Shown here piece by piece: positions 9,224 through 15,200 of a DNA stretch of 64,000 bases. Below the pieces are notes generated by a model. It worked only from the letters and a program-made list of their open reading frames with translations. It did not search any database and was not told the origin of the DNA. Position 1 is the first letter of the stretch, and each line of letters starts with the position of its first letter. This DNA is from Macrostomum lignano (Eukaryota), in assembly GCA_002269645.1 (NCBI GenBank), contig NIVC01001334.1:1-64000 (forward strand), given 5' to 3'. Made by a program: the position numbers and the translations under genes.

Positions 9224-12200
9224 ATGGACATTGAGACGACAGTCAGTGAGACTTCTGCTCAGGCTGAGTCGGAGCAGCCCCAAACTAGCGAGGATGGGAC
9301 TTTTCGGGTAAGCAAAATTAACCTAAGCTTCTATTATACCCTACGAGTGGAATGAAACGCATGGAAACTCCGTTTACCGACTCAAAGATTCAACACTTTT
9401 GAGAAATCGATTACTTTGCCTGGGCTAGAACTGCGCCTCTTTTGGGCTGCGGTGCTCAGAAGAGACCAGTTTCAACCGGTTACATTTTGAGTTGCTGCGG
9501 GGTACAAATCTGCCAGTTTGATCTGTCAAGAAACCTGTGTTTGACTCTGGCTTGAACAAGTAGAAAGCTGTTGGGATTATTTTAGAGACTGTAGTACTCT
9601 AATATTTAAACTGTTCCGCTCTCACCTCATGAGGCACTACCTTCGAATTCGCAAGACGTCAAAGCTGCCCGTGCTTGGCGTGAGTCCAACCATATTCTTT
9701 GATTGGGTCTGGCCAACGTATATCATCTATCTACCGAGCAAAAGGTTACCACTATCACTTTGTTGCAATCCCAACATACAACATACGCCACGACAGGAGC
9801 CGAGGCAGCGTCTGATCTCCAACAGTGCGTCTGCCGCGTCGGCACCGGCTGACATGCAGTATCATCAGCATCACCTCCAGCAAATTGGCGAGTTTCGCCT
9901 CGATCTGTCCGACGGAGACGGGGAAACTGGCTGGGAGAGCTCAGAGAGCTGCAACGTCTCGGTGAGCAAAAGGACTAGTTACTGGTAGGGCAGAACACTG
10001 CAAAGTTTGAAGGCTTCAGAATGCATTAGCAAGATCAGTTTGTTTGTTTGTCTGTTAGGTTTGTTGTTTGTAAGCAGTCATGCCAATTACACTTGAGCCT
10101 TGAGCACGTAGGGAACAAATTCAGGGGGAAAATTCAGGGAACATGGCCAGGCATGTACAGTCTCTGTGCCTCGGAGTTGTTCCTCATAGTCGAGAATAGC
10201 ACAAGCCCTAGGGTCCGTGCTGTGCCGCAAATTAACGTGGCCGAACTCTCAATGTGGAATCGAACCTAGATACGAGCCTCGTACTTGGGAGCGACAGTCA
10301 GACGTCTTAGCGTAGGTTTTAAGGCAATGGATAATTCTGTAGCTGCTTGTCTTTCGCTGGCTGAGGGGTCATTTGTCACCTTGAGCTGCAACAGCTAGAC
10401 AACAACTTGCAAACAAATAACTCCTTTGTTATTTATGCCCATTCCTATCTATCAACATGAAATTTTTCAGGACTGCGACAGGCCACCAGATCCAAGAGAC
10501 TCCGAATCGGACTTCGACGAGATGCCGCCTCGGCTGTCACTGCTCGGCTGGCGATTGCCTCGGTCTTGTAAATGGGAGAGATTTTCATTAACTATCAAGG
10601 CTAACCACTTCACTCCAAAAACCCTTGAACGAAAGGCCATAGACATTTCAACATAGCAAATCCTTTCCAGCCTTACAAAGACAAGACTTATGACTGTTCT
10701 ACGAATATATACAGTGTTATTCTAGTTGCTGTTGAACTTAAGCCTCACCCATATTAAGCCTCACCATACCTCGGCTATTGAGGCTTCTAGCAAGTAAAAA
10801 ACAGCTCCACTGACCTTTTTGAGGTTAATTTAACATAGCTCGTACATGTAACAGGTTTCCTAAAATATTACCAATTAAATCAATTAAATCATAAGAGCCT
10901 CTTTATCCGGCTCTCGGGGCCTTCGAAACTTCACAATAGAAATCCAGCCCTCTCAAGTTTTGTCTCTTTTCAGTTCTTTATCTCATCTTATCCTCTTCTC
11001 TCTCTTCTCTTCTGCTCTCTCCTCTCTCCCCTCTCCCCTCTTTCCCCTCTCGTCTCTTCTCTCCTCTCTTCTCCCCCATCTCCCCTCTTCTCTCTCCTCT
11101 CTCCCCTCTCTCCCCTCTCTCACTCCTCTCCTCTCTTCTCTCTTTTATCTTTTCTCTCATCTCATCTCTTGCATCTCCTCTGTTCTCTCGTTTTCTGTTC
11201 CCTCTCTTTTCCACTCTTATCTGGCCCGCAGCAATGAGCTGAATTCTCTATCTGGCCCTTGATCTTAGGCCAGGCATCTGTCTCTTTTTAGAGCAAATTC
11301 TGCTCATTTTCAAGGGCTATAGCACCCGTAACCAGAAGATTTTTGGGACAGCCGTTAAACCGTCACGAATGAAACCAACCGAATCCCAAACTCCAAACAG
11401 ACCTGCTGTGGCTGATAAACGCATTTAACGCCTGGCGACTGTGGCTCTTCCTCACCGGATTCAGCATTGTGACCGCACTGTTCAGCAGTGCCGTCATCAT
11501 CGCCAACAATCTCATCAGTTTGGGTGCGCGCAACATCATAATATGGTTGCTTGACTACTCTTCGTAGGAAATTCTGCACAACCTTCTACACTTCCTTATT
11601 GTTTTTAAAATTTTCAAGGCCTGCTCAGCGCTCGCTACAATCGAAGCCTGGCCATTGCCGAGACTCGAGACTGGCCAGATTTTGTACTTTTCGTGCTGTG
11701 GTGGGTGGCCAGTGTGGTGCCTTTCATCCTGCTGTCATGCCTGATGGTCCAGCTGTGCAGCCCCATCGCTGCGGGTGAGTCTGGGAATCAGAGAGTCAGA
11801 GACTTGGGAGACAGAGACTTAGGAGTCAGAGACTTAGGAGTCAGAGACTTGGGAGACAGAGACTTTGGAGTCAGAGACTTAGGAGTCAGAGACTCAGGAG
11901 TCAGAGACTTAGGAGTCAGAGACTTGGGAGTCAGAGACTTGGGAGTCAGAGACTTAGGAGTCAGAGACTTGGGAGTCAGAGACTTAGGAGTCAGAGACTC
12001 AGGAGTCAGAGACTTAGGAGTCAAGAAATCAGGAGCCGGTGACGTAAGAGTAAAATCCAAGAATCGTCCCCATCACTGGCCCAGGCTCCGGGATCCCGAG
12101 CTCCGCTGCTTTCTCTCGAACGCCTATCGTGAAAAATCGCTGCTCGGAAGCGCCGCCCTGCTCACTCGCGTCATCGGCCTCATCCTGGCGCTGAACTCCG

Positions 12201-15200
12201 GCCTGCCAGTCGGGATGCTGGGCCCCAACGTGCACATGTCTTGCTGCATCGCCCACCTGCTCATGTTTGACCACCGACTGCAACGACAGGTCCAGCCGGA
12301 CCCGAGGGCCGCGGCCGCCATCGGGCGCTTCGGCCGGTGCCTGCGGGCCGTCCGAGTGCTGGCGTCCGCTGCCTGCAAGACGCTCGAGGTGACGGAGGGG
12401 GCGGACGTTGTGTCAGGGAGGGGCGGATGGTTGTTTTAGGGAGAGGCGGATGTTGCGTCATGTTGAGACGGATAGCTAGGTTTTGGGAGAGGATGATTTT
12501 TGTGTGGTAGGCAGATTAGTGATGCAAACTGAAAATCTCCACGAAACGCCTTCCCGAACCAGCCGTGGACTTGGGAGCACCAGGAGATGATGTGCGTCGC
12601 CGCGGCCGTCGGGGTAGCTTGCACTTTCAACGCACCGATCAGCGGCGTTCTGTTCTCAATTGAGCTCACCACCAAGTACTTCGCGGTGAACACCTACTGG
12701 CGCGGCTTCTACTGCAACATTGTGGCCACCATGGCTATGAGCATTCTCATGACCGGCATTCGGCACAGTGAGGCTGCCTGTCTACCTACCTACCTATCTA
12801 TTTATCCATCTATCTATCTATCTATCTATCTATCTATCTATCTATCTATCTATCTATCTATCCATCTATCTATCTATCTATCTATCTATCTATCTATCTA
12901 TCTATCTATCTATCTATCTATCTATCTATCTATCTATCTATCTATCTATCTATCTATCTATCTATCTATCTATCTATCTATCTATCTATCTATCTATCTA
13001 TCTATCTATCTATCTATTTATCCATCTATCTATCTATCTATCTATCTATCTATCTATCTATCTATCTATCTATCTATCTATCTATCTATCTATCTATCTA
13101 TCTATCTATCTATCTATCTATCTATCTATCTATCTATCTATCTATCTATCTATCTATCTATCTATCTATCTATCTATCTATCTATCTATCTATCTATCTA
13201 TCTATCTATCTATCTATCTATCTATCTATCTATCTATCTATCTATCTATCTATCTATCTATCTATCTATCTATCTATCTATCTATCTATCTATCTATCTA
13301 TCTATCTATCTATCTATCTATCTATCTATCTATCTATCTATCTATCTATCTATCTATCTATCTATCTATCTATCTATCTATCTATCTATCTATCTATCTA
13401 TCTATCTATCTATCTATCTATCTATCTATCTATCTATCTATCTATCTATCTATCTATCTATCTATCTATCTATCTATCTATCTATCTATCTATCTATCTA
13501 TCTATCTATCTATCTATCTATCTATCTATCTATCTATCTATCTATCTATCTATCTATCTATCTATCTATCTATCTATCTATCTATCTATCTATCTATCTA
13601 TCTATCTATCTATCTATCTATCTATCTATCTATCTATCTATCTATCTATCTATCTATCTATCTATCTATCTATATCCATCTATCTATCTATCTATCTATC
13701 TATCTATCTATCTATCTATCTATCTATCTATCTATCTATCTATCTATCTATCTATCTATCTATCTATCTATCTATCTATCTATCTATCTATCTATCTATC
13801 TATCTATCTATCTATCTATCTATCTATCTATCTATCTATCTATCTATCTATCTATTTATCTATCTATCTATCTATCTATCTATCTATCTATCTATCTATC
13901 TATTTATCTATCTATCTATCTATCTATCTATCTATCTATCTATCTATCTATCTATCTATCTATCTATCTATCTATCTATCTATCTATCTATCTATCTATC
14001 TATCTATCTATCTATCTATCTATCTATCTATCTATCTATCTATCTATCTATCTATCTATCTATCTATCTATCTATCTATCTATCTATCTATCCAGGCTCA
14101 ATCGCAGGCGAGTACCTCATCGGCTCCGCCATCGCCATGGCCAAGTCGGAGGATCGCAATGTCCAGTCAGCGGACCTGGCTAGTTTCGTAGGTCTCGGGC
14201 TCCTCGCCGGACTCGTTTCCGTTGGCTTCCTGCGGTTCTACAGGCTCTGCCTAAAGCTCGGGTCTCGCCGGCTGGTGACCTGGGTGGAGCGGCGACTGCC
14301 CTGCCGACTGAGGCGCTGGGCGGAGTGAGTCATCAGAAGTTTTTAACGTAGGAGAACAGTGTCTCAAAAAAGTCCAGATAGTATAGGGCTCCATAAGCTA
14401 AGTGTCAGGGACTCCATAATCTGGTTGTCAGATGCTCCATATTCTTGGTGTCAGATGCTTCATACTCTGGGTGTCAGGGGCTCCATACTCTGGGTGTCAG
14501 GGACTCCATAATCTGGGTGTCAGGGGCTCCATAATCTGGGTGTTAGGAACTCCATATTCTTGGTGTCAGATGCTTCATACTCTGGATGTCAGGGTTCCAT
14601 ACTCTGGGTGTCAAGGACTCCATACCCTGGGTGTCAGGGGCTCCATACTCTGGGTGTCAAGGACTCCATAATCTTGGTGTCAAGGACTCCATAATCTGGG
14701 TGTCAGGGACTCCATATTCTTGGTGTCAGGGACTCCATACTCTGGGTGTCAGGGACTCCATACTCTGGGTGTCAGGGGCTCCATACTCTGGGTGTCAGGG
14801 ACTCCATATTCTTGGTGTCAGATGCTTCATACTCTGGGTGTCAGGGGCTCCATACTCTGGGTGTCAAGGACTCCATAATCTGGGTGTCAGGGACTCCATA
14901 TTCTTGGTGTCAGGGACTCCATAATCTGCGTGTCAGGGACTCCATAATCTGGGTGTCAGATACTCCATATTCTTGGTGTCAGATGCTTCATACTCTGGGT
15001 GTCAAGGACTCCATATTCTTGGTGTCAATGACTCCATAATCTAGGTGTCAGGGACTCCATATTCTTGGTGTCTGGGACTCCATACTCTGGGTGTCAGGGA
15101 CTCTATAATCTGGGTGTCAGATACTCCATATTCTTGGTGTCAGATGCCCCATACTCAGGGTGTCAGACGCTCCATACTCTGGGTGTCAGGGACTCCATAC

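Follow-up and report, generated by a model that had tools for sequence, protein, structure and literature searches.

Gene structure and gate motif

The DNA analysed here is a stretch of 64,000 nucleotides from Macrostomum lignano, a free-living flatworm (positions 1 to 64,000 of contig NIVC01001334.1, assembly GCA_002269645.1; hereafter the window), which carries on its forward strand, at approximately 11401–21932, a CLC channel gene whose fast-gate motif has leucine in place of the gating glutamate. M. lignano is a recent polyploid in which most regions are present as about three paralogous copies, with a divergence of 2.2% overall and 1.1% in coding sequence (PMC10733133). Exon mapping by tblastn with CLC-2-type hits, combined with manual splice analysis, gave a gene of at least 11 exons with the characteristic motifs in exons 3, 4 and 8 (Table 1). 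The splice sites of exons 1–11 are all GT–AG and their phases are all consistent. Once a single nucleotide is added at a run of C residues early in exon 3 (discussed below), exons 1–9 form an uninterrupted frame of 599 residues, and exons 1–11 preceded by two tentative 5′ exons have an open frame of 801 residues (13-exon model). Exon 1 lies N-terminal to the stretch matched by Pfam (residues 87–518) and was assigned to helix B by its resemblance to GEDWIFL... of the CLC-2-type hits. The second of the tentative exons was chosen by judgement, being the only one of ten candidates with compatible phases, acceptable splice signals and a plausible acidic sequence. Towards the other end of the gene a CBS1-like stretch (IKVSQVM...LPLVQYDE...LLLGQV) is visible in exons 9–10. 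The limits 12085 and 12767, between which a first-pass annotation of the window had placed its CLC feature, mark exactly where exon 3 begins and exon 4 ends.

That annotation had described GMLGP instead of G(K/R)EGP as the gate motif, and both the codons (GGG ATG CTG GGC CCC, 12212–12226, + strand) and a MAFFT alignment against 41 CLCs (39 eukaryotic channel-type sequences and two bacterial ClcA) agree with it: the GMLGP columns are exactly those of G(K/R)EGP. The alignment supports a natural variant, Glu-to-Leu together with Lys-to-Met, at the fast gate of a channel-branch CLC. The gating glutamate is thus absent here, as it is in CLC-K, and membership of the family is not excluded by this. 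The two substitutions originally counted for GAG to CTG are right, and AAG to ATG makes a third. In the alignment GSGIP, YWRGF, PTGVFMP, GAAIGR, FEVTG and PFYD are all retained and the differences are confined to the two gate residues. Retention of GSGIP and PFYD had also been claimed earlier; for PFYD this stands (the central-Tyr motif LPFYD is at 19375, with a second PFYD at 24149 in a tandem duplicate), but as assembled the anion-site motif GSGIP is in another reading frame than GMLGP and comes into frame only once one nucleotide has been added. The downstream motif FSIEL was found as described, at 12653–12667, where its counterparts in the alignment are FSIEV in channel-type CLCs and FVIEE in bacterial ClcA. 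Its presentation as loss of the proton glutamate, and so as a distinguishing feature of this gene, did not survive the comparison. That position is occupied by Val, in the form FS(I/V)EV, in all 39 eukaryotic channel-type sequences (CLC-0/1/2/K type) and by Glu in both bacterial ClcA; a hydrophobic residue there is normal for the whole CLC-0/1/2/K branch, so that the Leu is a conservative variant and not a second loss.

Table 1. Positions of the CLC gene, its motifs and the other features discussed in the text
Feature	Position	Strand	Remarks
Open frames upstream of CLC	2-757; 5443-6330; 6709-7299	-	252, 296 and 197 residues; first acidic
Tentative first coding exon	9854..9961	+	ATG at 9854; strong donor GTCTCG/gtgagc; resembles MYGRYTxxLGxF of CLC-2-type hits
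Tentative second coding exon, acidic cytosolic N-terminus	10471..10567	+	phase 0 to phase 1
Exon 1, helix B	11401..11563	+	GT-AG, frame continuity; no in-frame ATG
Exon 2, helices C-D	11629..11774	+	ends in phase 1; 11774/12085 junction also in A0A1I8F5Q8
Intron 2, 15-nt minisatellite	11775..12084	+	open in exon-2 frame, continues into GMLGP frame
Exon 3, helices E-F, GSGIP then ELRCFL...GMLGP	12085..12289	+	possible long form to 12388; A0A1I8F5Q8 reads through to 12385
Frameshift site, CCC run	12095..12097	+	1 base short of intact frame; between GSGIP and ELRCFL
GMLGP site, Met	12215-12217	+	Lys/Arg column
GMLGP site, Leu	12218-12220	+	gating-Glu column
Exon 4, helices G-H, FSIEL	12563..12767	+	homology and GT-AG
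Exon 5, helices I-J	14096..14324	+	homology and GT-AG
Exon 6, helices K-L	15349..15604	+	homology and GT-AG
Inverted repeat, intron 6	15640-16190; 16640-17130	+; -	arms with same open reading frame products on opposite strands
Exon 7, helices M-Q	18063..18389	+	identical to A0A1I8J6J9
Exon 8, helix R, central Tyr in LPFYD	19327..19448	+	duplicate copy 24101-24222
Exon 9, CBS1-like start	20386..20530	+	duplicate copy about 25164-25308
Exon 10, CBS1-like end, RRPLLLGQ	21454..21522	+	in frame, GT-AG
Exon 11, C-terminal cytosolic region	21601..21932	+	in frame, GT-AG
Simple repeats, CLC introns and 3′ region	12790-14090; 14350-15290; 18400-19250; 20590-21380; 21930-22800
Tandem duplication, units of ~4.77 kb with CLC exons 8-11	18858-23634; 23632-28377	+	98.7% identity
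Divergent actin-family gene	31395-32762	+	Pfam Actin, 290 bits across 31698-32762
Large cadherin/protocadherin-like gene	44973-57879	+	Pfam Cadherin

Family placement and other CLCs without the gating glutamate

After the addition of one base, the spliced model matched the Pfam family Voltage_CLC (PF00654) at 182.9 bits (cut-off 24.8) over profile positions 2–343 of 346. When a protein collection was searched with the concatenated CLC-like exons, the top matches were the M. lignano UniProt models A0A1I8I3X9 (98% identity) and A0A1I8IAU5, and a further entry, A0A1I8J6J9, is identical to the window across all of its 199 residues. The named eukaryotic hits are all of CLC-2 or CLC-K type, at 28–46% identity. 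A neighbour-joining tree (491 columns, 200 bootstraps) placed the flatworm protein with the eukaryotic channel-type CLCs, apart from bacterial ClcA, at 100% bootstrap; its branch is very long and lies outside the vertebrate CLC-K clade. It does not look like an orthologue of vertebrate CLC-K, being outside that clade and reading FSIELTTKY instead of FSIEVMSSH. The first-pass annotation had allowed for an origin independent of vertebrate CLC-K; the absence of grouping with CLC-K suggests an independent loss of the gate, in line with that part of the claim, but the exact position of the protein in the tree is poorly supported (bootstrap of 41.5% at most).

In a survey of the gate residue in 250 retrieved proteins GMLGP was unique, and the Lys or Arg before the gate was kept in all the other CLCs without Glu at this position. 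The gate change is not as singular as the earlier annotation implied: Leu, Met or Val is also found there in CLC-K, nematode, environmental and Amoebophrya CLCs. Most vertebrate CLC-K proteins have GKVGP, and GKLGP is found in mouse ClC-Kb and in chicken and quail CLC-K, in environmental eukaryote contigs that cluster with crustacean-type sequences, and in Amoebophrya CAD7933255. The nematodes Steinernema carpocapsae (L596_029955) and Panagrolaimus have GKMGP, as does another environmental eukaryote contig, and a JGI metagenome cluster has GRVGP. The Amoebophrya sequence and the second environmental contig were not placed in the tree; those non-Glu CLCs that were included fall in separate parts of it and none groups with the flatworm gene, from which it appears that the gate may have been lost several times, separately. 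No further GMLGP protein was found by word-index searches with the concatenated exons, the N-terminal half or the exon-3 peptide, or by exhaustive phmmer with exon 3. A literature search turned up no description of invertebrate CLCs that lack the gating glutamate, nor of the function of these sequences.

A frameshift between GSGIP and the gate

GSGIP (12084–12098) is completed across the exon 2/3 junction (G/GC TCC GGG ATC CCG, the slash marking the junction), and its reading frame differs from that of ELRCFL...GMLGP; as assembled, the GSGIP frame ends at TGA 12192–12194. The protein translated in the first-pass annotation is consequently not encoded by the assembled sequence, as a frameshift of one nucleotide lies between GSGIP and GMLGP. 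The addition of one base to the CCC run at 12095–12097 restores GSGIPELRCFL. One disabling lesion, of the sort that marks a pseudogene, is therefore present (the frameshift at 12095–12097 with its stop at 12192), while multiple lesions, lost splice sites or decay of motifs are not seen: no further stop or frameshift was found in the 9–13 exons.

A database model that covers the site is A0A1I8F5Q8 (exons 2–3), which reads LRDP/RAPLLS and so implies CCCC in its source sequence. As this model shifts frame about 10 times in 470 nt (157 residues), that source sequence must be full of 1-nt indels, and its CCCC was rejected as decisive for the frameshift.

Changes of −1 in G/C homopolymers are a typical signature of long-read consensus errors, and a second such change is present in the window. 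In the large cadherin/protocadherin-like gene there is an apparent −1 gap at a GGGG run (48643–48646), where the frame ...LSLRLNEMTPPG has to continue as ALLANLLAVGFHS... in another frame; when the two frames are joined at ...NEMTPPG/ALLANLLAV... the product aligns gap-free through the junction to protocadherin gamma-B2 (5szr_A). The long open frames of the cadherin gene are of 677, 340, 338, 218 and 209 residues. With two −1 changes in G/C homopolymers, both in genes whose frames are otherwise open, consensus error is the favoured cause. The Mlig_3_7 assembly was built by Canu from PacBio reads, with polishing by Pilon; the share of its bases that REAPR scores as free of error is 63.95%, as compared with 31.92% for the older ML2 assembly (PMC5730564). 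Polishing is hampered in this species by the fact that 93% of read pairs map to several loci (PMC10733133). The frameshift in this copy is probably due to consensus error; more broadly, it is more likely that the gap in the CCC run is either such an error or a lesion private to one of the roughly three paralogous copies than that the whole family is dead.

Alternative explanations

The account that we favour, by a modest preponderance, is that the gene encodes a very divergent, lineage-specific CLC of the channel branch in which the GMLGP gate evolved while the rest of the protein was constrained, the gap in the CCC run being likely to be an error or a private lesion. The change from KE to ML takes three substitutions within six bases, and the other approximately 1,800 coding bases contain one indel. 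Decay by drift is disfavoured because many stops, indels and broken splice sites would then be expected and one indel is present. The paralogue model A0A1I8IAU5 differs from the window in 1 of 169 residues in exons 7–9 as against 3 of 20 in the read-through tail beyond exon 9 (Fisher P = 0.004), a protein-level hint that the transmembrane part is under purifying selection. The tandem units within the window cannot serve as an internal measure of selection, as their unique sequence is identical. We infer, without regarding it as a demonstration, that the protein was a working one when the Leu/Met gate became fixed.

Several points weigh against this account. The CLC frame is broken as assembled, and A0A1I8F5Q8, with its many changes of frame, is weak evidence for CCCC. 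This entry is also the sole model covering the N-terminal half, and no annotated protein was found that reads that half in the correct frame. The start of the CLC model is only tentatively placed, a stop codon for it was not found, and the tandem duplication of exons 8–11 could disturb the CLC mRNA. Finally, word-index protein searches (concatenated exons, N-terminal half and exon-3 peptide) and exhaustive phmmer (exon 3) gave no orthologue with an identity above about 46%.

The strongest competitor, and one to be taken seriously although it is less probable than the favoured account, is a young pseudogene, in which the 1-nt deletion is real in one of the three or so redundant copies and the older GMLGP gate is functional in at least one other copy. 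Not only are the frameshift and the stop at 12192 present in the sequence, but the number and the divergence of the paralogous copies given above would accommodate this, as by our own rough estimate about one indel in 1.9 kb is expected for a neutral redundant copy at 1–2% divergence, so that the single indel would fit neutral drift; the fact that the neighbouring cadherin gene is also frameshifted could mean that the whole block is degenerating. This is countered by the fact that at least 1.8 kb of coding sequence contains a single lesion and neither a stop codon nor a broken splice site, by the nature of the two lesions in the window, both of which are −1 changes in G/C homopolymers and thus typical of long-read consensus errors, and by the cadherin long open frames, in which one frameshift was found (no systematic scan was made).

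An old, decaying pseudogene, with GMLGP the product of mutational decay in a dead CLC gene, is improbable. It could account for the very long branch and for an identity of only 28–46% to any other CLC, for the fragmentary database models of the locus, and for the failure of a Pfam search at E ≤ 10, made in every frame of the CLC 3′ region, to find a CBS domain, a result that also counts against the favoured account. For drift to produce three substitutions in two neighbouring codons, however, a long neutral period would be needed, whereas some 600–800 codons over 9–13 exons are stop-free, the splice sites are canonical, the other pore motifs are intact, the Voltage_CLC profile is matched end to end, and the paralogues are near-identical in exons 7–9 but not in the adjacent tail.

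A similarly low probability attaches to a correct assembly in which the frame is kept by retention of intron 2 or by an acceptor at 12003–12051, giving a GMLGP protein without GSGIP; such a product, lacking the central serine, would probably either not conduct or serve a new function. The intron 2 repeat (GAGTCAGAGACTTAG-like) encodes (GVRDL)n and is stop-free in the exon-2 frame, so that one open reading frame (11693–12439) links exon 2, across the intron, with the GMLGP frame, and several AG acceptors within the intron would preserve the frame. An open frame in a repeat of 15-nt units can, however, easily arise by chance; the best pyrimidine tract belongs to the canonical acceptor at 12084/12085, and splicing there from the phase-1 end of exon 2 yields an exact GSGIP, whose 15 bases would otherwise be conserved, unexplained, in an unused frame, and A0A1I8F5Q8 takes the 11774/12085 junction. 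Rescue of the frame by alternative splice sites was accordingly judged unlikely, as it costs GSGIP. A base-calling error at the gate codons, with AAG GAG as the true sequence, is highly improbable: nothing was found in its favour, it requires three substitutions, the errors seen in the window are homopolymer indels and not substitutions, and the out-of-frame stretch SRDAGPQR of A0A1I8F5Q8, which comes from another assembly or locus, needs C at 12218 and is incompatible with the G of GAG there.

Surroundings of the gene and database models

The window has GT–AG introns and long micro- and minisatellites. Very long simple repeats in the CLC introns and 3′ region include (CTAT)n over about 1.3 kb, an array whose units are approximately 33–36 nt (by eye) and a 17-nt GTCACTCTGTCAATGT array; arrays of GGGAT(G)/GGGATTGG in the CLC region translate as GWDGM/GMGLG. 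The inverted repeat in intron 6 is possibly a foldback element or a transposon remnant, and the arm that was tested had no Pfam hit. All 25 differences between the two 4.77-kb tandem units fall within AGTT/GGGAT-type and 17-nt (GTCACTCTGTCAATGT-type) repeat arrays, and the duplication is either very recent or an assembly artefact. The two duplicate copies are also crossed by a UniProt fusion model, A0A1I8F... (P0092, annotated as mRNA cap methyltransferase). Source names at this locus are misleading, A0A1I8F5Q8 being named ‘Integron gene cassette protein’, and A0A1I8I3X9 ends in a shifted frame. For annotation there is a warning here, as one homopolymer gap can hide a whole gene in M. lignano assemblies.

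The actin-family gene downstream has a same-frame N-terminal piece upstream of it, and the short stop-containing interval between them is probably a small intron. The three minus-strand open frames upstream of the CLC gene had no match in Pfam and may be exons of genes still unannotated.

Predicted function and comparison with known systems

In the CLC family the mechanism centres on the gating glutamate, and when this residue is neutralized in CLC-0, CLC-1 or CLC-2 the protopore gate is locked open. To our knowledge CLC-K is the one natural exception given in textbooks. CLC-K has Val166 at the gate site and a linear current–voltage relation, and a review treats it as the exception (PMC5362633). 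In the flatworm gene G(K/R)EGP would have changed to GMLGP while the rest of the protein was, as we infer, under purifying selection, so that the product would offer no carboxylate to the external anion site but would keep the central Ser and Tyr. On the model of CLC-K and of the E-to-V/A/Q mutants of CLC-0/1/2, the protopore of an intact product would be permanently open and only weakly voltage-dependent; proton coupling would be lacking, as it is in the channel branch anyway. A CLC-K-like Cl− channel without the fast gate and with all the other pore motifs kept is thus a reasonable prediction. The fuller claim, that Macrostomum evolved a functional, constitutively open CLC independently of CLC-K, without either the gating glutamate or the preceding basic residue, is put forward tentatively, as we would rate its chances at somewhat below even. 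If it is true, a possible role would be transepithelial Cl− transport in the protonephridia or gut, as a functional analogue of the kidney channel, and the accompanying Lys-to-Met change would serve as a natural experiment on the role of the basic residue once the gate has gone. Together with the nematode, Amoebophrya and environmental sequences the locus suggests repeated loss of the gate within the channel branch, and it would provide comparative material on which residues co-change, on whether an accessory subunit is always needed and on what physiology favours a CLC without a fast gate.

One near parallel is with vertebrate CLC-K (ClC-Ka/Kb, rodent ClC-K1/K2 and the bovine CLC-K structure). 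Both belong to the channel branch, both have a hydrophobic residue at the gate and another at the proton-glutamate position, both keep the central Ser and Tyr, and by analogy weak voltage dependence would be expected of both (PMC5362633). The flatworm protein differs in lacking the FSIEVMSSH signature, in having Met for Lys before the gate and in a CBS region that is barely recognizable. It also has no known link to barttin, the CLC-K beta-subunit, no homologue of which was searched for. With the E166A/Q/V-type mutants of CLC-0, CLC-1 and CLC-2 it shares the branch, FSIE(V/L) and the predicted locking open of the protopore gate; those mutants are engineered, whereas in the flatworm the change arose naturally and goes together with Lys-to-Met and with strong divergence elsewhere. 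With the Steinernema/Panagrolaimus, environmental and Amoebophrya CLCs it has in common the lack of the gating Glu, but these are only 28–42% identical to the flatworm protein and keep the Lys or Arg where the flatworm has Met.

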